The position numbers and the translations under genes were made by a program. The notes under the pieces are model-generated. The model saw only the letters and a program-made list of their open reading frames with translations. It had not been told where the DNA came from and did not search any database. A DNA stretch of 64,000 nucleotides from Guillardia theta CCMP2712 (Eukaryota; Protista; Cryptophyta), in the NCBI RefSeq assembly GCF_000315625.1, contig NW_005434617.1:35134-99133 (forward strand), written 5' to 3'. Positions 2,199 through 50,887 of the stretch are shown here, piece after piece; within the stretch, counting starts at the first letter, position 1, and every line of letters starts with the position of its first letter.

Positions 2199-3671
2199 AT
2201 GGCAGTGGATGTCTGCGTCTGGCTCATCAGGGTCTGTTTGCTCCATATGTGCCTGCTCAGTGCTCCTGCCATGGCTCTACGAGCTGACGGAGCAGCTACC
2301 AAGCGCGCCATGGTCCATTCGTTGTTGCGCCCGAGGCTGTTCTTGCACCCTCCTCGGGGAGGACTCGGAGCAGACCCATCGCAGGAACAAACGAAGGCAT
2401 TCGGGAAGCACACAGACGACAGGGAGACAGCGAGGAGATGGTTGCTGTTTCATATGACCTTCACACTCAGAGCCGTGTGCGATCGCTCCTGGGCGTTCTT
2501 CATCAGCATCATGCTATCGAGCCGCGTCGGCTCCCTGGTCTACCTCCTTCGGACTGCCATCCAGATCTCCTTCGGCCTCGTGTCCTGCCGGCAGAGCTGG
2601 GAATGGCTCTCGCTACGCAAGACCGAGCACGTGGCCTGGCTGTTTATGGTCCAGCAGGTGTCGCTCTTGGTGGTAGCGATCCAGCTGTACATGCTGGAGA
2701 AAGGAAGCGCTGCCATGCCCATGGTGCTGCTGCTAGGGATCTTCTCGGGGATGGAGATGATATCATCGCGGCACTTCAAGCGCGTCAAGGAGAAGAAGGA
2801 CGTCTACGACCTCGTCACCCGTGACGCCCAAGGAAAGCAGCAAGAGATCTCCTCCCGTCTTGCCGCAGCCAACTCGTTGCTGACGAGGATCGACCTCCTG
2901 GTCGCCTGCCTCTGCCCGCTCGCTATCAACTTCTCCATGTCAGTCTTGGACAGACTGGGCACCATGGCATTGCTAGTCGCTCTCCAGCTTATGTCCGTCT
3001 TGCTGCTCTCCTTCGCTCCCTCCTCCGACGTCTCCCTAGCGGGTCAGCCAAGTCCCAGCATGTCTGTCAAACAGCAAGGAGACAAGGGAGGAGGCGCGGC
3101 TGCCGGGAGCCTCAAGCTGCGAGTTCTCGTGCTCGCTTACGGGCTCTTGTACTTCACCGTTGTGACTCCGGGAGGGCTGTTCAACATGTACATGAGAGAG
3201 GAGGGCCTCGACGTGCGGCTGCTGGGGTACTTCGGGAGTTTGGCTCAAGTTTGTGGCGTCTTGGCCACGTTTGCTGTGCCGGTGGCAGCGAGGAGGCTGG
3301 GCATGTATCCCTGCGCCCTCTTCTTCTCCCTGTTCCAGGCAGCATGCGTTGCTGGGGTCGCTCTGCTCGCAGCTCGTGGCGAGCTGCCGTTGGCCATGTG
3401 CCTCTGCGCCATGTCGCGGTTCGGGCTGTGGGGGTTCGACCTCTCCCATCGCACCCTCGTGCAAGTGCAGTCAGACGCGAGGCTGGGACTCTTCTTGCTG
3501 GAGGCGAGTTTGGCCGAGACCTTCTCGATTGCCATCTTCACTGCTAGCGCCATCTCCAAGAGTTTTCGCTTCCTCTGTCAGGTCTCAGCCGTCGCCACGT
3601 GCTCGTCCTCAGCTCTTGTCCTGCTTTCCGCTCTCCTTCCGTCCGGCAGCAGCTCAAGCCGCAGCATGTGA
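2199..3671 (+). CDS. Ferroportin (FPN1/IREG, SLC40)-like MFS transporter, intronless, with hydrophobic N-terminal presequence
   Basis: 490-aa ORF with many TM segments. CDRSWAF resembles FPN GDRMWxF, and SRFGLWGFDLSHRTLVQ resembles ARIGLWSFDLxxxQLLQ. Confidence 0.8.
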   Translation: MAVDVCVWLIRVCLLHMCLLSAPAMALRADGAATKRAMVHSLLRPRLFLHPPRGGLGADPSQEQTKAFGKHTDDRETARRWLLFHMTFTLRAVCDRSWAFFISIMLSSRVGSLVYLLRTAIQISFGLVSCRQSWEWLSLRKTEHVAWLFMVQQVSLLVVAIQLYMLEKGSAAMPMVLLLGIFSGMEMISSRHFKRVKEKKDVYDLVTRDAQGKQQEISSRLAAANSLLTRIDLLVACLCPLAINFSMSVLDRLGTMALLVALQLMSVLLLSFAPSSDVSLAGQPSPSMSVKQQGDKGGGAAAGSLKLRVLVLAYGLLYFTVVTPGGLFNMYMREEGLDVRLLGYFGSLAQVCGVLATFAVPVAARRLGMYPCALFFSLFQAACVAGVALLAARGELPLAMCLCAMSRFGLWGFDLSHRTLVQVQSDARLGLFLLEASLAETFSIAIFTASAISKSFRFLCQVSAVATCSSSALVLLSALLPSGSSSSRSM

Positions 3672-7083: not shown

Positions 7084-10000
7084 ACTGCTATCCTCTGCAC
7101 TCCCTCAACTTGCCATTCTCACCACCTTCTCCCCTCCCCTCCCTTATTCCACCCCCTCCCACTAACTTCCCTCTCTGCTTCCCTGCTGCTGCTGCTGCTC
7201 CTCCTCCTCCTCCTCCTCCTCCTCAACTCACTCTGGTAGAGGACCAGCTCTTGCTCGAGGGCAGTGAGGATCGTCGACTTGGTCGAGTTCTTCTTCTTCT
7301 CCTTCTCCCACAGGGGCCGCACGAGCGTCTGCGAGAAGACGATGAGGTCCTTGACGTCCTCCATGGCGAGCGAGGAGTCGCTGGGTAGCGACGCACGGAG
7401 GAGATGGTCCTGCATGGCGGGAGAGATGATGCGATCCTTGTGCTGCATGCGGTCGAGACGGAGGAGGAAGTCGGAGTGGAAGCGAGAGGAGTTGAGGGAG
7501 AGGAAGAGGGCCTGAAAGGAAGTCAGAGGAGGAGGAGGAGGAGAAGAACAAGGAGGAGGAGAAGAACCAGGAGGAGGAGAAGAACCAGGAGGAGGAGGAG
7601 GAGGAGGAGGAGGAGGAGGAGAGAATAGAGGAGGAGGAGGATAGAGGAGAAGGAGCAGGAGGATAGAGGAGGAGGGATTGGGCAGCAGAAGAATGGGTAG
7701 GAGGTAGGAAATGAAAAAAACAAACAGAGAGAAGCAGGGAGGGAGGAAAAGAGCGGGGGCAGGAGAAGGAACATAAGCCGCAAGATCAGCACAGAAGGAG
7801 CAATGAGAGGAGAGAGGAGGGAGGAGGGAAGGGAATGGAAGAGAGAGAGGAGAGAGGAGGGGCGAAGAGAGAGGAGAGAGGAGAGAGGAGAGAGGGAGGA
7901 GGGAGGAGGGAGGAGGGAGGAGGGAGGAGGGAGGAGGGAGGAGGGAGGAGGGAGGGAGGATCAAAGGGCATAACAAGGGCAGCTCTCACGTTGGCATCAG
8001 CCTTCTTCTGCTGGGATCCCTTGGCGGGGCATGTGGAGCCGTCGGTTTGATTGTGACGGGACGCGTTTGGGGTCAGGAGCGCCAGGAGCTGCCGCATGTC
8101 AACCTTGGTCTTCATGCTCTTGATTGCCTCCACGTCGAGCATGACGACGAGCCGACGGGCAATGGAGAAGGAGGCGGAGCTGAAGTCGTTGAGGTGCTGG
8201 CTGACGTTGAGAGCGTACAGGGAGGAGAGGACGGGAGAGACGGAGGAGGAGAAGGAGGAGGACAGGGAGGAGAAGGAGGAGGACAGGGAGGAGAAGGAGG
8301 AGGACAGGGAGGAGAAGGAGGAGGACAGGAAGGAGAAGGAGGAGGAGGAGGACATCTGCGAGAGCTGCTTCATGACGTCTGCCACGATCTTGCGGCCCCT
8401 CAGTCCCAACCTCTCGCTCGAGCTTTCCAGCTGCTGCCGTATCGCCGGGTGGAGCAGCGCTGTCCTCGAGGAGAGGAGGAGGAGCCCCACGAGGAGGAGG
8501 AGGGCAGAGCAAACGACCAGCAGCATCGCTCCTCTCCAAGCCGGCGCCTTGGACGGAGAGAGGCTCACGAACCTGTGAGGGGAAGAGGAGGAGGAGGAGG
8601 AGACCTTGACAGTCTGCGTGACATGCAGGGCGGAGGAAGCGATCATCCTCTTCGCCAGGTCCTCCACTGACTTGGCCTCCCTGCAGCTCTCTACCATCCA
8701 GCTGGAGCCCGAGGAGCAAGGATAGTCCCCGATCAGCTTCACATCCTCGTCCGACTGCACCGAGAGCACGCAGACGTCTGCCTTCACCTCCTCCTTCTCC
8801 TCCTCGCTCGCCCCCTCCTGCCAACCGCCGTCCTCCCAGCTGTACTGCAGCTTGAACCCAAGGTCGCAGCAGTCCAGCAGGGCAGTGAGCTGGGCATGAG
8901 GAGGAAGGGGGACGAGGAGGTGCTGCATTATGTCACGGCAGGTCAGCGCAAGGCCATTGCGCGTAGCAACGCCCCTTTCCTTGCCTTCCCCTCCCTGAGT
9001 CCCGCAGCTTCCTTGAAGGTACAGGAAGAGAGGTTTGCCCTCCTCTGCCCCCTCCACCAGCGTCGCGAAGGCCTTGATCACTTCCTCCCTCGTCGGCTGC
9101 TCGCTCTCCCCTCCTTCCTGCAGCAGGCAGATCGTCTCGTCCTCCTCCACTCCTTGCGAGCGAAGGAACTGCAGCACGTTCTCGCTGTCTCCTCCTCCTC
9201 CGCTGCAGAGGATCACGGCTGCGCGCTTCTTCTTCTCCTCCTTCTTCGCGACCTCCGAGGGCATCAAAACTATCGGCTCCTTCACTCCTGCCAGCGAAAG
9301 TTCAGAAAATGCGATACAAAACGACTGGAGAAAAGGCAAGGAAAAGGAAGAAGGAAGTAGGTTATGAGGAAGGAGGATGAAAAGGGACAGGGAGGAGAGA
9401 GGAACGAGAAGGAAGGGGGTCAAGGAGGAAGTGGGCAGAGGGCAGGGGAGAGAGGAGTAGGATCATCACGTTTCTCCGGCTCTTTCACATCAGGCAAAGG
9501 AACGCCGCGAGGAGAAGTAGACTACAAGACAGACGTCAGCAACCTTGTAGTACCTTGCATTTGTCATACACCAACACTTTCAAAGAACATCATGTCAAAG
9601 TCATGATCATGAACAACCGCGATCATCATCTCTCAACGTCTCTTTTATCACATTCATGAATCATCATAATCTCCATCATCTCGAACCATCAACTCGCTCA
9701 ACCCTCTTATTCATGTATTCTTCTGCTGCCCTTTGTTGCACTCCGCAAAACTCCCTTGTGCAAAGAAACGAATCGCTATGTCGCGACCAAACATCACAAA
9801 ACGATGAAAGAGACGACCAAACGAGATCCTTGTCTTCATATTCACATGCATTTTCTATCGGCGCTCTCACTCCCGCTCCCATTCTCTCTCGCTCTCTCGC
9901 CTTCCCTGCAGTCGTTACACATTGCTCCTGCTTTACGATTGCTGCCTGCCTGCCTCACAACTCTCGTCTCTGTCCTTCCTCCTCATCTCATCCCTTCCAT

Positions 10001-10102
10001 GATCCTTCTCCTCTCCATCACCTTCCGTCGCACATCGCTCGTCTTGTTCAACGTCATCATTTTGTTCCAGGTCTCCTGCGCCCAGGTCCCGAAGTCCGCC
10101 AT
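6895..10102 (-). CDS. Metacaspase (peptidase C14)-like protein with TM helix and long C-terminal region, multi-exon; may continue across the gap to ~6300
   Basis: Start MADFGTWAQETW at 10102. The main exon has PTREEVIKAFATLVEGAEEGKPLFLYLQGS and LTALLDCC (metacaspase p20 pattern), then the hydrophobic AMLLVVCSALLLLVGLLLL. Further exons at ~7230-7512 and ~6900-7015. Confidence 0.65.
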
Positions 10103-10134
10103 GGACTGTGAAACAACCCAGTTTTTAAACTGTT

Positions 10135-10690
10135 TCACCCCCATAATGACCGTTACGAGAGGGGGTAGGGGTACTCCAGTCGTAGCAGGGACCGAAACGG
10201 TGGGGCCGTGGAGCGAGGGGTAGGGGTACATAGAAAGATAGGGGTACGGTATGGAGATATGACATCGGGGTGAGGTACATTGTTACTACTACCCTACCAT
10301 GAGGTTATGGTCGTGAGCAATAGGAAAGGGGTGGGGTAGTCAAACCCTTCAAAATTGGGAGCGTTAGGGTGGAAATAGTGGGTGGGGTAGTTGATGGCAG
10401 GAACTTTGGGGAGGAAATAGTGGGTGGGGTAGTTGATGACAGGGGGTAGTGCGGAAAGGGGTGAAATGACAACAGAAGACGGTTGTGACCATGGACCACG
10501 GGGAGGAGGTGGGGGTACTAGAGTAGGGGTAGGGGTTATTTTGGGGTCCATGGGTGTCAAGATGGTATTCACTGGGTGGGGGTCCATCTAAGGAACAAGA
10601 AACTGGGACATTTCGTGGGTAATCGACTGGATATTTGGGGGTGGAGGTCATCATGGAAGGGGTCTGCATCGGAAGTCGAACTTGGGGTCG
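10135..10690 (-). promoter_or_regulatory. Strand-biased GGGGTA/TACCCC tract upstream of the metacaspase-like gene
   Basis: Dense GGGGTA words directly upstream of the ATG at 10102. Includes a 26-bp direct repeat (10371-10396 and 10413-10438). Confidence 0.45.
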
Positions 10691-10704
10691 GCACGGACGA
10701 AACT

Positions 10705-10860
10705 TTAATAGATAAACGCCACGAATCTATCTACCACGGGTACTCTCCCTCATGATGTGACGGAATATGTGAATACCCTTCTGAACGACGAACTAAGTTT
10801 TCGCACAGAACTGCCGTCGTATGATTGAGAGCCGCGACTCTCCGTCATACAACGGCAGTT
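10705..10860 (-). ncRNA. Candidate Fanzor omegaRNA scaffold
   Basis: Four consecutive stems: 10809-10860 (16-bp stem plus 5-bp inner stem), ~10779-10808, 10738-10778 and ~10706-10735. G-U pairs form only on the minus strand. Located at the element 3' end downstream of the nuclease ORF. Confidence 0.7.
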
Positions 10861-11077
10861 GTTTTTTTTGCCAAATTGTCTTCGGATGTTGTTGGAGCCT
10901 TACATGAATCCTACCAAATGATGCCAGTCAGTCACTTCAATGATCACTGGCATGTCGTAAACATCGGATCATAATGGAGGCAGGCACCGGGCAGGCAGGC
11001 AGGCAGGGAATTAGGCATCGAGTCCCGAGGGACGCAGTCTGGGTAGGGAGGGGGCGACAACAATCATTGAATTCACC

Positions 11078-13152
11078 TCAGGGGCGACGTAGGTGATTCG
11101 GTCTTTCAGGAAACACATTGAAACAAGTGAGTATATTCAGTGCAGCATTCAAGTCCCTGGATTTGATCGGCTTTCCTTTACAGCTGTCACGATAACAGTT
11201 AGATGAAAAGGTGAATTACAGGAGTATACAAAACTTGACATTACCTCGATGATCTGCAAAATTTCAATCCTCGTACTTCACTTTTCCTTGTTTTCAACCT
11301 ACAGGTCTCGTCTGGTTCTTTCCCTGTATTTTCAATCCGTCGAAGCACATCGAGCTCAGAACCACAATCGTTACAGCACTTGGTAGTACGGTATTCGTCA
11401 ACATCTACGACTCTGTAGTGATTCTCGAATCTTCTTCTTATCCACCTGACCGGTACAGGCCTTTCTCCTCGACGTCCTGTAGACGGGAACCTTGCATTTC
11501 CATATGCGATAACAGGTTCTATTTCTCCCTTTCCTTTCATTGTACGGATAAACCTGTCGACTGACTTTCGTTTCGAAATGTAGATGTCGAATTTCATCCT
11601 GGCGTATTTTCGCTTTGAATAATGCGAAGTTAACTCCTCCCAATGACTTGTAACTGCAAGAAGATAGTCTTCGAATCTTGATAGACTGCCGCCAGACTTA
11701 CTCGAGAACCCCTTGAGATAGTGCAATGTCGATTGAATATCTTGATCCCACGTCTTTCTTTTCTTTTTATTGCGATTCAGATGTGACTCGTGATAATATT
11801 GTTTTCTCGAAAACTGAAATCTTTTTCTGATTATTTGTTGATCATCTCTGAATTGTTCGACGGCCGATATAATGACGCTCCTCCCAGGGTCGATCGCAAT
11901 TACCCTTGGGCAATTTTTACATTCTTCGATCTCTCTTTGGTATTCTGAATTTTCATGTAATACTTTGTATGATATTGATATCTTCTTCGCCGATTTCCGT
12001 TCAGCCCTTTTTCTATCGGCAAGCCATTTGGTAGTGCGCAATGAAGGTTCCTGTTCGAGTCATGGCATCGATTGTTTTGACAATTAACGTGAAGCGAAAA
12101 CAAACCGATACACCGTCTGTCGTGATACTTGTAATCTCCTCTCTCTGATCTCTGAACAGATTCGAACAGTCGAAAATCCTTCTGAAATTCTTAGAGTTCT
12201 CCAAAGTTTGATCTATTCTCATGAACGATTTTTTATCTTCTCCCGGTTTCAAACTGTTCGCTTCTTTCAAAATGTAATACATCACATCATTATCGATTGT
12301 TAGATGTTTTCTGCCGAATTTCGACATTGGTGCTGCCTTGAATGTTTTTTTCGAGAGACCACGATCTTCGAAGAACTTCAACATGAACATGTGTGTCTCG
12401 ATTATCTCAAACAGATTTATCTGCAACCTATGATCAAATTTGTCATATTTGAAACTAAAAAGATCTTCGTCCCCCGATAATCCAATTAGTTGTTTCATAT
12501 GGTCGATGAAGGTTCCTATCTGCTGTGAATTATTCCTGTTAAACACTTCTGTCTTCAACTCGTAATCTTTCCTTTGAAACAATACATTCTTCACGTCTCA
12601 GCGATTTCTTGCTGATGGTTAATATGTAACTCTCCTTTGCAGAATTCGGCAATGAACTTTTCCAATCGGTTTGTAAAATTTGCTTTCAGGTCTTGGTAGA
12701 AATTCGTTCCATATTGATTTGCAGCGAATACAATAGCTTGCGAGTCTCCTCGAATTCTACATAAATCAACGAAAAGATGTCTTTTCTCTGACCAGAAATG
12801 TTGTAGAGTTGGATACTTGTTATCTGTACGGCTATGTTGTTCCATTCCAAGTGTAAAAACATTCCAGAAAAAGGTCGATTTGGCTCTCTTGATTTCATCC
12901 ACTACATATCGTAAATTCCCTGTATCCCTGCCACCCCATATCAGAAAACAGTTGAATATCATACTGCCTCTTGATGTGATCTGACTGATATGTAATACCC
13001 ATCTGTCGATCACGTCTAAAATCGATCTGTTCTCTACCTTGAGTCTCGAGTATAACCCACCGTGATTTGACGACTCTCGTGAATGGTTTTGAATAACTTA
13101 TTTCTTGACCGTTGTCTGAATCATCTGTAATTCGTTTTCTCTTCCTCGGCAT
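11078..13152 (-). pseudogene. Fanzor1 RNA-guided endonuclease (TnpB/Cas12 superfamily), ~660-670 aa reconstructed, apparently frameshifted
   Basis: N-terminal NLS-like MPRKRKR; ITTDGVSVCF; RuvC-I VIAIDPG; AYGNARF; RuvC-II VDEYRTTKCCNDC; RGLKFC. After a GT-AG intron (11244-11184) comes SCKGKPIKSRDLNAALNIL...RPNHLRRP* (RuvC-III). Frame breaks near 13056, 12594 and ~12050-12090. Confidence 0.9.
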
Positions 13153-13379
13153 GTTATAGTATGTTAGTCTGGCGAAACCATGTTAGATAGCAGGTAGTCG
13201 CTACATTTTTTTCATTACCATCGTTTCAGTGTATTGTCGGACCGCAAACTCTGTAATGGCGGGAAGATGAAACGAGCAGCCACAAACTTTCCGTCGGACT
13301 CCGGGAAGGCGGGAAGATTTTTTTTTCTTTTTTAAGACCCTCATACAGCCCCATTGGATGGGTGTATCAATGACCCCTG

Positions 13380-14500
13380 TCATGCTGGTCCAGGACTCCT
13401 TCGGGAGTCCTTTTGTCGATTAAAGGTTAAGTCAGCGGCCCGCGCCCGGCGGCGGCGGCCGGGCACTGCCACGGTGATCGGACCCGGGCGGCCGGGCAGC
13501 GGTACTGAAGTTGCCAAGTTGACACTCAGACGTTGCGCCGCGGGGTCCGCGGCCGCCGATGCTCCGGGCGGTGTGCCAGGACGGTCGGACTGTGCAGTGC
13601 CGGCGCCGCGCGCGGCCCCGGGGGGCCGGGCCGCCGGGCGCCGCGCCGGCGGCGCGGGGCCGCAGTCCGAGCGTGACGGCCAGGGGCCGCCGCTGAGTGA
13701 AGCTCCGAGCCCGACCCGGTCAGTGGCGGACGCACTGAGTCTTTTCACTCAAACGGTTACTAGTTATGTACTTGAAAATCAGTACCGTACCGTACGAGGG
13801 CGCCTCCGTACCGTACTGATTTTTAACTTCACTTTGAGTAACTTAGAGTACCGTACCGTACCGTCACTGCCGCAGTGCCGCCGGCGTGATCGCCGGATCA
13901 TAGCAGGAGAGCCTGAGAGTCCCGGAGGCCTGCTGACTCGGGTGGCCCGGCGGCCAGTTGCCTCGGACAGTGGCCCACTGGCAGGCTGGGCCGCGCCCGG
14001 CCTGGCACTGTTTCCGAGTCCGGCGAGGCCGCCGCGACCGTCTGCAGTGAGCCTGGCAGCAGCCTGAGCCTCAGGCTGCTGCCAGCCGGCGGCTGTCACG
14101 CCGCGCGGTACGGTCACGGATCGGACCGGCCCGGTACGGTACTATATGCGCCGGGGCGCGCCCACCAGTGCCGGCCCACCGTGACGGTGCCTGCCGGCGC
14201 CGCCGCCAGCAGGGCCACCGGCCCGCCGGGCCGCCGGGCCACCGCCGGGGCGGCCGGGCGGAACTTGTTGAACAGGCTGATCCTGCCGACTGCTGTCCCC
14301 TCGTTGAAACTTAACTGATACCTTCACTCACCCCCGGCCCGGCGCCGCTGCGAGCTGAGTCACGGACTCCGGCCGGGCGGCTCCCGGTCCCGAGTCACCG
14401 GGCCGTCCGATCACAGGCTCAGCGAGCTGGCCCAGGCAGTGGGCCGCGGCCACCGTGACTGGCAGGCCGGGGACCGTCTCCGGGATATGTGTAACGGTGT
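13380..14500. other. GC-rich palindrome-dense intergenic island upstream of kinesin
   Basis: Very high GC with CCGG, GGCC, GAGTC and CCGTACCGTAC words and AT-rich insets. The ORFs here are spurious. Confidence 0.55.
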
Positions 14501-41305: not shown

Positions 41306-42595
41306 ATGTCATCGAGCGACCAGGTAGTGGTTTTCAACGATTCTGAGAATGCATCACAAGGACGTGAGACGCAGACATCACGATTGGCGATGAGTAGCAT
41401 TTCTGTGGATGAAAGCCGAGAGGCCATGGTGGAGACCCCAGTTTCCTGCTCCAAACCTCCTCGACTGCATTACTTGGACAAATTGCGAACATTTTTAACG
41501 CTTCTTGTGGTCGTGCATCATTGTTTTTGGGTAGTTCAAGCAGGCTGGGTGCCCTTCCAAAGGCCATGGCAGACTGATAATGCAACGACAGTGATCCAGT
41601 ACATGATCCTGGCGGGAAACCAGGCGTTCTTCATGGGTCTCTTTTTCTTTTTGGCTGGCCTCGTCACTATTCCGTCTCTGAAGCGCAAGGGTGCGAAGGT
41701 GTTTCTGAAAGACAGATTTTATCGATTGATGGTTCCCGCTATCCTTTATGACTTGATCGGTTTCCCTTTCCTCTGGGTTGTCGTTGAAGCTGCATGGAAT
41801 AGTCCTATGAAGGGCTCAATCTTTTCTTTCGGTAAGGTGTGGACCGACTACTTCATGTTCTATAAAGACCGCGTGTTTGTTGTCAATCATATGTGGTTCA
41901 CAGTGACTTTGTTTGCCTTCAATTTGACATTGGTGTGTGTACCCGAGAAGTATATTTTTGTTGAACACTCCATCGAATCGATGTCAAAAAAGGAAATCAT
42001 GATTGTACTGATGAAGATGTCTTTGGTACTGTTCGTTCTCAACTGTGTGCCCCGTTTTTTATTGCCTGACGGTTACATATGGATTCCTGTGTACGGAAAT
42101 CTTGGATTCCTCATGCAATACAGTTCCGCCTTTGTTGCTGGCATTCTTGCGAACTCTTACCAATTCTTAGATCACATTCACATGGAACATTTGTCCCTCA
42201 CACTCACATGCAGCACAGTCTTCTACTTTTTATTTCAGATTTTTCAAGTGTACTTATTTGAGGTCATCCGTGGAACAATGGGTTTCTATCCTCAAACGCT
42301 CTTCTTGACCCTCTTTGAGCAATCTTTTGCTGTATTTTGGGCATACTCGCTGTTGGTACTTTTTAAAGAATATCAGAATGGAAATCCAACTCAGATCCAG
42401 AGTCAAATCATCGGCTCCGCTTATGCAACATACATCATTCATCAGTGGATCATCGTACCATTGGCAATTGCTTTTGCTTACACAAATTTGTACCCGTTAG
42501 TTGTTAGCCTGATCTTGTCTCTAGTGTCGCCGTTTCTGGCTTGGGGAGTCGGAATCGCGCTCAAAGCCATTCCTGGATCATCGATTATTCTCTAA
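41306..42595 (+). CDS. Acyltransferase-3 family membrane protein (OpgC/MdoC-like), intronless
   Basis: RLHYLDKLRTFLTLLVVVHH, NQAFFMGLFFFLAG, SLKRKG..FLKDRFYRL..P, HMWFTVTL and AYATYIIHQ; about 10 TM helices. Confidence 0.9.
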   Translation: MSSSDQVVVFNDSENASQGRETQTSRLAMSSISVDESREAMVETPVSCSKPPRLHYLDKLRTFLTLLVVVHHCFWVVQAGWVPFQRPWQTDNATTVIQYMILAGNQAFFMGLFFFLAGLVTIPSLKRKGAKVFLKDRFYRLMVPAILYDLIGFPFLWVVVEAAWNSPMKGSIFSFGKVWTDYFMFYKDRVFVVNHMWFTVTLFAFNLTLVCVPEKYIFVEHSIESMSKKEIMIVLMKMSLVLFVLNCVPRFLLPDGYIWIPVYGNLGFLMQYSSAFVAGILANSYQFLDHIHMEHLSLTLTCSTVFYFLFQIFQVYLFEVIRGTMGFYPQTLFLTLFEQSFAVFWAYSLLVLFKEYQNGNPTQIQSQIIGSAYATYIIHQWIIVPLAIAFAYTNLYPLVVSLILSLVSPFLAWGVGIALKAIPGSSIIL

Positions 42596-46509: not shown

Positions 46510-49500
46510 CTAGTCCAACAGCTTCAGGATCGCCTTGAGCTGCCAGACCTCAGCAGCCTGCGAGGAATCAGCGAGCACAACGACACGAGCAAGAGGAGGA
46601 GCAAGGGGAAGAGCAAGAGGAGGAGCAATGCTTACCTGCAGCTTCCTCACGATCTGCTCGCAGAGGTCGCGCCTGTCTCCCTCCTGACCAGCTTCCTGTC
46701 GCCTCTGCCCCGTCGCCTCCCCCGTCGCCTCCCTGCTCTTCGCTATGATCTCTTCACCCTCACTCGGTACCGGGTCCTTCACCTCCTTCTGCTTTGCTGC
46801 CTCATTGTACCTGACCTCCAGCTCGTCCGCCTCCTTCCTCTTCTCCTCGTGGGCAGTGGCAGGTGGGCGCATAGCTCGTGGCTGCTGCTTGTCCCAGCTG
46901 GGGTCGTCCTGGAGGAGCTCGACGGCCTCGGGCACCAGCGGCTCATCCATGTCAGTGTCTCGTGGGTCACTGGCGGCGTCCCAGTAGTTGACGCCTCCTC
47001 GGAGGAGGATGGGCTTGTTGTGCCAGACAGAGAGGAAGAGCTTGCCGAGGTGGCCGGGGGATGAGAAGGCGACGAGGAGGTAGGGGGAGTCGATGGGCTC
47101 GAGGGTGACGGCGAAGTTGAGGCTGCACTCGCGGTCGAGCTTGAACTGGATGGGCGGGGGGTTGAGCATGTCAGAGCGGGAGAGGTCGATCCCCTTGTCC
47201 TCGATCGTCTTGCGCTTCAACAGCACGAAGCCGATCGGGTTCGCGGCATCCGCGTCCTGCAGTGGCTGGGGCTGGGCGAGGGAGATGAAGCAGAGGGTGC
47301 GAGGCTCCGACACGTGAAGCTCGAACTGCGGGTTCAGCAGCCACTCGCCGCGCGTGTCGTCAGGCTGGAAGGGAGGACCTTTAGCTCCTCCTCTCGTCCA
47401 GTACGCCTTGGATCGCGTGATGGTCCACGAGGAGGGGAAGAGGCGGTTGACGAGCAGGCAGCCTGACTGGAAGGTGAGGTACATCTCTCCCTTCTCCAGC
47501 GTCCCGTCTTCCCCGTCCGCCTTCATCCAAAACTTGTTGGGGTCGTCGTGGGGGCATTCAGCAGCTAGAGCTCGATACTTGCTCCAGTTGCTGCTGCTGT
47601 TGCCCCAGTCCCCGCTGTACTGCGAGTCACCTTGCCAGGGGTTCCACAGCTGCACCATCCTCCCTCCCTCCAGCTCCTTCAGCGCTAGGATGGGATACAC
47701 TCGCCCCTTGTGCAGCGACACACAAGCAGCCGTGCTGGCTCCTCCGCCGAAGTAGAAGCCGAGCATGCAGCCGCTCTTGAGCCAGTCCACCATCTGCCGC
47801 CACAGCGACCCGTTGACCACTCGCGTGAACACGTCGGGAGCTCGAGACTCGTCGAGGAGGAGGACCTGCGGAGCCCCTGCGCCCCCGTCAGACGAGCGAC
47901 TCGCCAACTTCCTCACCTGCTGTCAGGTCCTTGAGCGCGTGCTGGATCCTCCCCTGCGACAGCCGCTCGTAACAGCCGAAGGCCTTGGCGTAGGCCTTCT
48001 CAAGCAGCGGAAGCCACATGATCCGCTGCGACCGCATGTCCTCCTGCCCGAACGAGCCTTGTGCGTCCACTCCCGCAGAGAAGAGGAGAGCCCTCGAGTC
48101 TTTTTTTGCGGGGAGGCTGCGCCAGCAGGTCAGGAGCAGGAGCGGAGGGAAGGAGCAGCAAAGGCTACCGGTCATCGATGATCACTTTCTTCCACTTGCC
48201 CTTCTTGAAGACGCGGATCACAAAGACCCCGCACTCCGTGTTCCACTCCACGAAGAGCGACTGCAGCTGCTCGAGCTTCGTCGCTACCTGCCGGTCACCC
48301 TCGTCAGCCCCCCCCCTCCCTCGTCAACGACCGAGACCGCAGAAGCTGCTGCCAGAAACCAAGAGTTGGCGATGCTGCCCTGCTTGATGACAGAGCTCTT
48401 GCCTCCCTCGGGAAAGAGGATGGGAGGACTGGTGGGGGGCAACCTGCGAGCGGAAAGTGAGGGAAGGAGAGTCAGGAATTCGAGCGAGGATCACCCGCAG
48501 TTCAAGTGCTCGCGCAAGTCTGGCTGGCCGTGCCAGCAGGGGCGGAGGAAGGAAACTTCCTCCACCTTCCACCTCTCCGAGTCCGACGAGCGATTGAGCA
48601 TCTTGCTGCCGACAGGGAAGTCCGGGTCCTCGTACTTGCACTGCAACTTCTGACAGCACGCGATGATCTGCTTCGCGCTCCTCCTCTCCTTCCCTGGCCC
48701 CTTCTGCTGGCTCCCACCCGACGGGTTTTCTTGGAAGATCTTCTCTTCGAGGTCAGCCGCCTCGAACTCGTAGTCCGACTCCTCGTCCGACTCCTGCTCG
48801 TCCTGCACGCCTCCCTTGGGTTGGATCAGGTTGTCTCCCCCTCGCGGCTCCAGCTGCACCGGCTTGTTGGCTGTCACGGTCAGCCAGAACTTGAGCTCCC
48901 CGACGACTTGGCTGGGGTCGAACACCATGGGGATGATGACAAACTCGTCGCGCTCCTTGCCAGGGTCGAGGATCTTCGGTGCAGATATGACAACGTCGCG
49001 ACTCCTCTTGAAGGGCTTCGACATCAGCTCCACGTCTGCTCGCTTCAGCTGAGAGCCAAGCTTCTTCCCCTCAAGTACTCTCTTCCGCACCACCGCCACC
49101 CCGATGGCAACATTGTACTCAGCAGGCTCCTTGAACGGCTTTCGGAAGGAGGGGGTAGATGCCCCTCGCTCGTAGTCGGGGTTGAACCTCGAGTCCTGTT
49201 GCGTCACCGAGATGAACACCTGCGTCTTCTCTCCCGTCGCCAACTTTAGCATCACCTGCGGGTTCTGCCACCAGTTGGGGTTTCCCATCTTCGGCAGGCC
49301 CCCGCAAAGGCGCGCCGTCTTCCGCCATGCTCCCTGCACCACCAGCGGCTCGGGCTGTGGGTGTGTGGAGCGTGGCACATACCAGGAGGGAGGGAAGAGC
49401 TGGCAGATGTGGAGGACATGGAAGTATCTTGTCCAGTCTTCAAAAGTCATCCAGAAGCTGCCGCCCATGGATGCCTTATCATAGTCCAGCGCCTTAGCTA

Positions 49501-50887
49501 TCTCCGGATTTGCCACCCACTCCGGCCCGTCGTTGGACCACATGCCGCTCCAGGGGCTCGAGTTCGTCTGCACGTTGGGCTTCAGCTTCATGAACCGCAT
49601 GCCCACCGCAGGCTCCTTCACGTCCAAGATCGAGTACACGCAGTGACTCTTGAAGTCACCGTCGAAGTCCGTAGTTCTCCCCTCCCTCTCCACTTCCTGC
49701 CAACACCCCAGCAGACCTTGCTTGCACCAGAGCAGCAGCTGCTGCCACAGGTACCCATTCATGATCTGGTCCTGCACATTCTCCTCTCGCAAGTTGATGG
49801 CCTGTGCGGCTCCTCCTGTCAGGTCCCTCAGCGCATAGGTCACGCTCCCCGTCACCAGCGCTTCGTAGCACCCGTGCATCTTCGCGTACGCTTTCTCCAG
49901 CAGCATCGGCCAGATCTGCTGAGGATCGCTACTCCGAGTGTACAGCGGGACGTTCACTTGGTCGCAAGGGATCCTGTCGTCGATGACAACATTGTGCCAC
50001 TGCCCGTACTTGTAGTAGCGGACGGTGTAGATACCGTACGCCCTCCCGTTCTCGGTGGAGGGGATCAGAACTTCCAGCAGATCGCGTCGTCCCACGAGGC
50101 ACCCAAGGGCCCCAACAAACCAGCCGTTCCCTAACGACCCCTCCACCAGGGGCGCTGCCTCCCCAAACACCACCGCTCCTCCGCTGCTTACGATCTGGTG
50201 GGGCCGGATCCACTTGACGGCATCATGGGGGATGTGATGCCTGGAGGGCTTGCGAGGGTCCATGAAGAGCGAAGAGGCAGCGGCAGGGAAGTCCGGGTCG
50301 ACGAACTTGCCGCCCTCATCGCGGTTCGCCGGGTCCGCTAGCAGCTCTTCCTCCCTCGAGCCTGAAGTGAAAGGGATCAGCATCTCCCGCTTCGCAGACT
50401 TCTCCCCCTTCATCGTCATGTGCTGCTGCTCCTTTCCCTTGAGAGCCGAGGGATCGGAGCTACCCGTGAAGGCCTTCGCCTGCGGGAGACGCTTGATCTC
50501 TCCTGGCCCTTTCGACTCAGTCGCCACCTCCACCTCGCCTGGCTGCTGCTTTCCCCACGATCTCGTCAGCTTCCGAGGCACAGGGTTTCCTCTCGTGGTG
50601 CTCTGCGGAAGCCGAGAGCCTTGCTGGGCATGCAGCTGCTCGAGCTTGGAGGCCTTCTGTCTGACAGCCTCCTGCACGCCTCCTGCACCGCTCCACTGTC
50701 GGACGCCATCGCCTGCTTGACTTCGAGGGGCTCGGCTCGCAGCGTTGGAGGAGGCAGCGGGTTCAGGAGCGAAGGAGACAGCAGGTCTGCCATGAGAGGA
50801 AGAGGAGGATCTGCCTGCCCTCGCCATCGCCTGGCGATCCTTCATCGCCAGGTACTCCTCCAGCTCCTCGTCCTCCATCCCCGCCAT
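46510..50887 (-). CDS. Calpain-like protein with two tandem CysPc + domain III modules, both catalytically degenerate
   Basis: Module 1: [62 protein letters not shown]. Module 2, across introns at ~48445-48493 and ~48110-48165: [47 protein letters not shown]. Confidence 0.9.

Follow-up and report, generated by a model that had tools for sequence, protein, structure and literature searches.

A probable omegaRNA scaffold of four abutting hairpins at the right end of a multi-copy Fanzor1 element in Guillardia theta CCMP2712

Four abutting hairpins on the minus strand, at 10706-10859 of the 64,000-nucleotide stretch of Guillardia theta DNA analysed here (hereafter the window), are probably the omegaRNA scaffold of a Fanzor1 element. 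The element occupies 10705-13430 (2,726 nt), is multi-copy and carries its Fanzor gene on the minus strand. The stems share the strand of the Fanzor gene, follow its stop codon (11078-11080) and reach the element end at 10705. The scaffold is conserved between copies, and the sequence just beyond it differs from copy to copy. The layout of the hairpins at the element end is the one expected of a guide RNA, and the locus is a new example of a known system.

The minimum-free-energy (MFE) fold of the minus strand at 10706-10859 consisted of four abutting hairpins with an energy of -68.5 kcal/mol, and the mean probability of its pairs was 0.95. In this fold SL1 (10810-10859) has a 15-bp outer stem, a 2x2 internal loop, a 6-bp inner stem and a 4-nt loop, and SL2 (10780-10809) has 4+4+3 bp interrupted by a U-U mismatch and a 1x2 internal loop. 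SL3 (10738-10778) is an 8-bp stem with an apical part of 3+3 bp, and SL4 (10706-10736) is an AU-rich stem of 12 bp with a 7-nt loop and four G-U pairs. SL1 is preceded by a spacer of eight adenines (10862-10869, minus strand), which counts nine in the majority of copies. A single base, the unpaired A at 10705, stands between the end of SL4 and the start of the predicted guide. A preliminary description of this DNA had proposed four stems without gaps after the A8 tract, and its minus-strand sequence and coordinates for 10685-10870, including the 20 nt at 10704-10685, were found to be correct. The proposed stems were borne out by the MFE fold and by its significance. The 186-nt stretch 10685-10870 gave a z of -6.3, and none of 200 dinucleotide shuffles folded equally well. 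A sliding scan of both strands over 10237-13746 (segments of 156 nt, step 39 nt) gave a z of -8.1 on the minus strand for 10705-10860 against -5.6 on the plus strand. All scan segments off 10705-10860 remained at |z| <= 3.3, and the hairpin region is thus the sole strong structure of the element.

The strand preference of the structure was also evident from its energies and pairs. The RNA fold energy of the hairpin region was -68.5 kcal/mol for the minus strand against -51.0 kcal/mol for the plus strand, a bias of 17 kcal/mol. Eight G-U pairs are distributed over all four stems, and the opposite-strand counterpart (a C-A mismatch that would become G-U if the strand were flipped) occurs at one position. 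The strand bias to which the preliminary description had pointed was borne out by both the pair counts and the energies. Searches of Rfam, which holds no family for such RNAs, gave no match at E <= 1 in 10000-14000 and no match at gathering score across the whole window.

The limits of the element were taken from the alignments of two ENA metagenome contigs (L001 and L002), from a step in the depth of a DNA run with the same species label (X1) and from the loose ends of contigs at both edges. L001 and L002 aligned to the window at 98% from 13431/13434 to exactly 10705 and then continued into unrelated sequence. The contigs of X1, mapped on 10375-13674, had a depth of ~60-80 in the right flank and ~650-1600 within the element, the step falling in the bin that begins at 10705. 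In X1 and in another run, X8, contigs left the window sequence at 10704, 10705 or 10706 for several distinct sequences; the copies together show at least five right flanks, which differ from one another and start at 10704-10706. The departures on the left side fell at 13430-13432, with at least five different left flanks. The junction of the window's own flank with the element end was confirmed by X1 contig 1. The copies in the two metagenome contigs and in the contigs of two organisms' runs are ~98-99% identical. The depth gives a rough copy number of 10-25, the summed contig depth not being a copy count, and blastn and the covariance model revealed no further copies inside the 64-kb window. 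The summed X1 depth over the terminal 110 nt (10705-10814) was 1623, compared with ~650-1250 elsewhere in the element, a possible sign of additional truncated copies in which the RNA end alone is kept. The sequence CACCTAAAGT was present in the right flank of one copy (X8, at 10704) and in the left flank of another (X1, at 13430), an indication of insertion into another repeat or of copies that are nested or in tandem.

These junctions define the place of the guide. Because the likeness between copies ends exactly at 10705 and is followed by variable flanks, the first 20 nt of locus-specific flank (10685-10704, minus strand) stand where a guide is expected. This is the guide position given in the preliminary description (about 10704-10685), and the drop in conservation between copies that it had anticipated at about 10705 was seen to the base in L001, L002 and the contigs of X1 and X8. 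An end of the copy homology far from 10705, which it had named as evidence against its reading, was looked for, and the homology ended at 10705 exactly. The scaffold itself (10705-10860) showed no base difference among the window, L002 and the contigs of X1, X8 and a further run, X15. In L001 the sole change was a 6-nt insertion in the apex of SL3, with which the four-hairpin fold was kept (-67.9 kcal/mol). There are 11 variable sites per ~2 kb of coding sequence, and an unchanged 156-nt scaffold is therefore not significant alone.

Both edges of the element carry TTAA in most copies, as would be expected of the duplicated target of a piggyBac- or Kolobok-type TTAA transposon. The right-edge TTAA (10705-10708, minus strand) has three bases (UUA) paired within SL4 and reads TTAG in one X1 copy. 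The left-edge TTAA (13427-13430, minus strand) is followed by CCTTTAATCG, is the candidate TAM and reads TTAT in one copy. The left end and 5' untranslated region (13153-13426) contain a 7-bp hairpin at 13393-13410. An inner TTAA at ~13335, about 95 nt inside the true end, was discarded as the left end, the copies being alike up to 13430. No terminal inverted repeats were found (the end-to-end local alignment score of 14 was reached by 20% of shuffles), and no transposase ORF, DDE type included, was found within the element. The TTAA edges fit a piggyBac- or Kolobok-type transposon, but the inverted repeats and the DDE transposase of such an element are lacking. The insert has 46-48% G+C, and the 2-kb bins of the window run from 46% to 64%. 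Another AT-richer patch holds an acyltransferase-3 ORF (41306-42595). The host genes of the window, in the regions 46510-50887 (minus strand) and 2199-3671 (plus strand), include a ferroportin-like ORF and two calpain-type cysteine protease ORFs, one of them of 798 aa and uninterrupted. A near-perfect palindrome of 33 nt is located in GC-rich DNA at 14053-14085, ~620 nt outside the left end of the element.

The main rival to the omegaRNA reading is that the hairpins work at the DNA level, as single-strand end signals for a transposase supplied in trans (of the IS200/IS605 or Helitron kind), and that there is no guide RNA. An element that has neither terminal inverted repeats nor a transposase of its own, and that has a subterminal hairpin at its left end, would suit this explanation. 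The right-end stems also remained significant when folded as DNA (-31.7 kcal/mol with a z of -5.3 for the minus strand; -23.4 kcal/mol for the plus strand), and the strand bias could also arise from strand-specific transposition. Known end signals, however, need far less than 155 nt and four hairpins, and the left and right hairpins are dissimilar. The terminal SL4 falls from 12 bp to 6 bp when folded as DNA, and this loss of half its pairs favours an RNA over a DNA hairpin. The right end is moreover the omegaRNA gene in all studied TnpB and Fanzor elements, and a role of the DNA is compatible with a role of the RNA. A purely DNA-level signal was judged unlikely on this balance.

The preliminary description had also placed a Fanzor gene on the strand of the stems, and the same-strand gene upstream of them was recognised as Fanzor1 by its profile matches and RuvC motifs. 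Its main exon (11245-13152, minus strand, ATG at 13152) is followed by a 61-nt GT..AG intron (11184-11244), whose spliced joint is present in X8 contigs, and by the last exon (11078-11183), which encodes the zinc finger's second half together with RuvC-III (RDLNAALNI) and ends in the stop codon. A second GT..AG intron, of 166 nt (10911-11076, minus strand), starts 2 nt past the stop codon in the 3' UTR and is spliced in some transcripts, as indicated by an X8 joint. The distance from the stop codon to SL1 is ~217 nt unspliced and ~51 nt after removal of this intron. The protein starts with a basic stretch, MPRKRKR, which looks like a nuclear localisation signal. The RuvC-I aspartate is the D of VIAIDPGR and aligned correctly with SpuFz1. 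The RuvC-II glutamate stands six residues ahead of the zinc-finger CxxC in DEYRTTKCC (DEYRTTKCCNDC), at the position that matches the SpuFz1 alignment; this placement of the RuvC-II glutamate is a rearrangement by which Fanzors are defined (PMC13565253). The second cysteine pair of the zinc finger spans the intron (FCRSS/SC).

Searched alone against solved structures, the protein gave a single match, SpuFz1, at 1e-6. A profile built from the protein and 17 relatives and searched against the PDB gave E-values of 7e-32 for SpuFz1, 1.6e-28 for PpFz1, 4.7e-16 for GtFz1 and 3e-4 for the mimivirus Fanzor2 (L79), and the Pfam TNB domain was matched by 16 of the 18 family members in the profile. The assignment to Fanzor1 follows from the matches to three Fanzor1 structures and the far weaker match to Fanzor2; judged from its sequence, the gene of the element is that of a Fanzor1 nuclease. 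L001 and L002 both encode, in one unbroken frame, a protein of 632 aa (P0004) that showed full identity to the window within the searched part, and the consensus protein of the majority copy has 666 aa.

The reading frame is intact in most copies, and the window's own copy departs from the majority by indels of 1-9 nt more than by substitutions. The indels are located at 13364, ~13299, 13061, 12931, ~12599, 12062, 10947 and 10861. Those in the main exon are +4 (13061), an in-frame +3 (12931), +2 (~12599) and +4 (12062), and three of these insertions shift the frame of the window's Fanzor, the ATG frame closing after 85 codons. Additional small indels fall in untranslated parts. The window-specific indels were seen in no run, the mapped contigs carrying the majority form alone, and they are either errors of assembly or changes confined to this copy. 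If they are real, the window holds a nuclease-dead copy with an intact RNA end, like the 'ghost' loci of Spizellomyces (PMC10432273), and any role of its RNA would require Fanzor protein made by intact copies.

The nearest non-self relatives of the protein share 38-45% identity over the RuvC half and come from the cryptophyte Hanusia phi, which gave the closest of them, from uncultured eukaryote-like metagenome contigs and from giant-virus-like contigs. Scans of IMG/VR and of JGI metagenomes seeded with peptides gave no relatives, and the exact 22-nt SL1 pattern was absent from the JGI metagenomes. A word-index protein search of 90% clusters returned the protein itself and relatives at 25-39% identity, and nothing else. 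No relatives between ~45% and 98% identity were found in IMG/VR, in the JGI metagenomes, or in the 90%-cluster and exhaustive 50%-representative protein searches. Three relatives of 39-43% identity (L004, L010 and L011) lie on long gene-dense contigs with giant-virus markers, namely an RNA polymerase subunit 2 with an intein and a YqaJ exonuclease.

A sister family (P0008), itself a multi-copy Fanzor1 family and with 44% protein identity in the RuvC half, comprises 19 near-identical proteins (>=90%) on separate contigs of 2-3 kb, and five of these contigs (L003 and L005-L008, ENA metagenome, GROS21-1 samples) were examined. In L003 and L005-L007, ~118 nt past the stop codon are shared and are followed by two unrelated flanks; L008 is rearranged, an inverted copy of the 5' region of the sister family being joined inside its SL2. 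The shared 3' piece consists of an A-rich spacer and four abutting hairpins (z = -3.6). Its SL1 is two-tiered (7 bp, a bulge, 4 bp and a 4-nt loop), SL2 is interrupted, SL3 is short, and the AU-rich SL4 ends one base before the copies diverge. The hairpin order, the linkers of zero to three bases and the position relative to the element end agree with the RNA of the window, and the sequences are unrelated. A covariance model of the window RNA gave no match among nine loci of relatives, the sister region included. The 3' regions of L004, L010 and L011 (giant-virus-like) and of L009 showed no comparable layout, these loci being compared without mapped element ends. The recurrence of the predicted layout in the sister family supports a conserved RNA architecture in this Fanzor lineage, as evidence of a weaker kind than true covariation.

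Transcription of the element was examined in RNA-derived contigs and raw reads. The runs X8 and X15 contain RNA, as their contigs carry spliced joints. These contigs cover 10705-11360 and have zero depth in both flanks. One of them, X8 contig 16, extends from 10912 through 10704 and then for 193 nt into the flank of another copy, which is the read-through that a flank-derived guide requires, in contigs that carry no strand. RNA over the stems is represented in both runs, and no discrete small RNA was seen in the RNA data examined. Plus-strand GT..AG joints (11127-11183, 11514-11581 and 11650-11887) were found in X8 and X15 contigs and in single raw reads of X21, and belong to antisense RNAs that are spliced and run over the Fanzor gene; one of these introns (11127-11183) abuts the sense intron acceptor at 11184. 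X21 is the sole raw-read RNA run, of which ~6% was sampled. It gave 95 reads, all within 11365-12684 and in a single orientation, and two of them cross plus-strand GT..AG introns; these reads appear to be antisense to Fanzor. None of the 95 reads of this ~6% sample fell on 10705-11364, where the stems lie, and no pile-up of RNA ends was present in the RNA data examined. A poly(A)-type library is not expected to retain an RNA of this kind. Transcription through the hairpin region is likely.

The same data bear on two other explanations. The hairpins may be an ordinary structured element of the 3' UTR or 3' end of the Fanzor mRNA, with a part in the stability, termination or localisation of that mRNA and no guide function, as the region lies downstream of the stop codon in a transcribed region and the RNA contigs are continuous from the UTR into the hairpins. 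The structure nevertheless stops exactly at the element edge, one base before the variable flank, the layout recurs in the sister family and in published Fanzor1 loci, and there is no reason for a UTR element to adjoin the end of a transposon, all of which make this account still harder to sustain than a DNA-level signal. The other explanation is that SL1, or the overlap of sense and antisense transcripts, feeds small-RNA silencing and that the structure is a Dicer substrate and no nuclease scaffold. SL1 taken as a 21-bp near-perfect hairpin would fit, as would the spliced antisense transcripts across the element in three runs, but SL2-SL4 and the exact abutment to the element end are left unexplained and the SL1 of the sister family is short (7+4 bp). 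Silencing was regarded as the least probable of the readings, and very improbable in itself.

Under the favoured omegaRNA reading, the closest match in form is the RNA of GtFz1, the Guillardia theta Fanzor1, which is 150 nt long with four stem-loops and has the TAM TTAAN (PMC11423790, PMC10432273). In both systems a Fanzor1 gene has at its 3' end a scaffold of ~150 nt and four stem-loops, and the guide follows the last stem directly on its 3' side. Both have a TTAA-type motif, TTAAN in GtFz1 and TTAA at both edges of the window element, and the nearest protein relative of the window's Fanzor comes from a cryptophyte like Guillardia. The two RNAs, however, have no recognisable sequence similarity when the window's is compared by eye with the published sequence, and the proteins are remote, the profile match to GtFz1 being weaker than that to SpuFz1. 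The GtFz1 RNA overlaps the last 17 codons of its gene, whereas the scaffold of the window starts well past the stop codon, and the supplement of the paper gives a single G. theta locus against the many copies of the window element. Three peptides of the window's Fanzor were absent from the portions of the supplements of Saito et al. (PMC10432273) that were searched.

SL1 departs from the known systems in its length. The three Fanzor1 RNAs whose structures are solved have an SL1 of 7 bp (Xu et al. 2024, PMC11423790), against a far longer predicted SL1 (15+6 bp) in the window. The inner 6-bp hairpin of the predicted SL1 could correspond to the published 7-bp SL1. The apex of SL3 is disordered in GtFz1 and touches neither protein nor RNA (PMC11423790), which fits the 6-nt insertion tolerated there in L001. 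According to a recent review, the 3' copy of the target-site duplication sits inside Fanzor1 scaffolds (PMC13565253), and the UUA of the right-edge TTAA is likewise paired within SL4.

SpuFz1 of Spizellomyces punctatus (Saito et al. 2023) is the top match of the window's Fanzor among solved structures and resembles it in being multi-copy, in having a variable extension of 14-15 nt past the conserved part and in having 'ghost' copies that retain the RNA end without a working nuclease. The Spizellomyces scaffold, however, has 75 nt and two stem-loops, its TAM is CATA, and it forms part of a 3' inverted repeat whose last letters are CACTA, whereas that of the window is 155 nt long with four stem-loops, no inverted repeats and TTAA edges. 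The omegaRNA of TnpB (IS200/IS605, ISDra2) likewise combines a right-end scaffold with a flank-derived guide, the motif adjacent to the left end being the TAM, and ISDra2 shares the lack of inverted repeats, the hairpins at both ends and homing to the empty site. It differs in being prokaryotic and in an RNA that overlaps the 3' end of tnpB and forms a pseudoknot. Insertion sequences of this kind do not have the TAM as the last bases of their right end, whereas the right end of the window element itself ends in TTAA, and the window gene has spliceosomal introns and an N-terminal basic stretch. Besides the long SL1, three features set the window element apart from the known Fanzor systems: its scaffold is parted from the reading frame by an intron-containing UTR, it has no inverted repeats despite its TTAA edges, and the Fanzors characterised so far are all remote relatives of its protein.

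In the proposed mechanism, transcription would follow the Fanzor direction and continue beyond the right end of the element into the flank. The RNA may then be cut back to a point upstream of SL1 and close to the A-rich spacer, on the model of TnpB and its processing of its own mRNA. The product would be a scaffold of ~155 nt followed by 14-20 nt copied from the flank, from 10704 downwards, published Fanzor1 guides being 14-20 nt long. The Fanzor protein would bind the scaffold RNA and be guided by the flank-derived part, as GtFz1 and the homing of TnpB suggest, and in the case of the window's RNA the protein would be supplied by intact sister copies, because the window's gene is frameshifted. 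The target would be matching DNA adjacent to TTAA, that is, the empty site left by excision, given the TAM of GtFz1 and TnpB homing. With TTAA right before the guide as the TAM, the occupied locus would itself be a target of its own guide, and this was counted against the reading. The lack of X21 reads on the stems and of a pile-up of RNA ends, a scaffold so uniform among copies that it shows no covariation, the lack of a covariance-model or Rfam match, the long SL1, the frameshifted gene and the antisense RNA over the element were counted against it as well.

A wider version of this mechanism is a dispersed multi-guide system, in which nuclease-dead copies and truncated 'ghost' ends would be under selection as stand-alone guide genes, loaded by the Fanzor of intact copies and each guarding its own site. 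The occupied loci would have to be spared somehow, for example by complementarity of the scaffold to the DNA upstream of the target. This version is put forward tentatively and is rather doubtful at present.

The general architecture of the locus is as predicted by published Fanzor work, and the analysis adds a well-delimited Fanzor1 locus with base-exact edges, a likely TTAA TAM, a four-hairpin scaffold of ~155 nt and a consensus protein. The nearest relatives being only ~40% identical, it is a distinct candidate for studies of guide RNAs and genome editing. How Fanzor1 elements escape cleavage at the sites they occupy becomes a sharper question with a right end that carries TTAA, and the near-identical copies with different flanks form a natural set of guides with which the role of Fanzor in its host can be asked.
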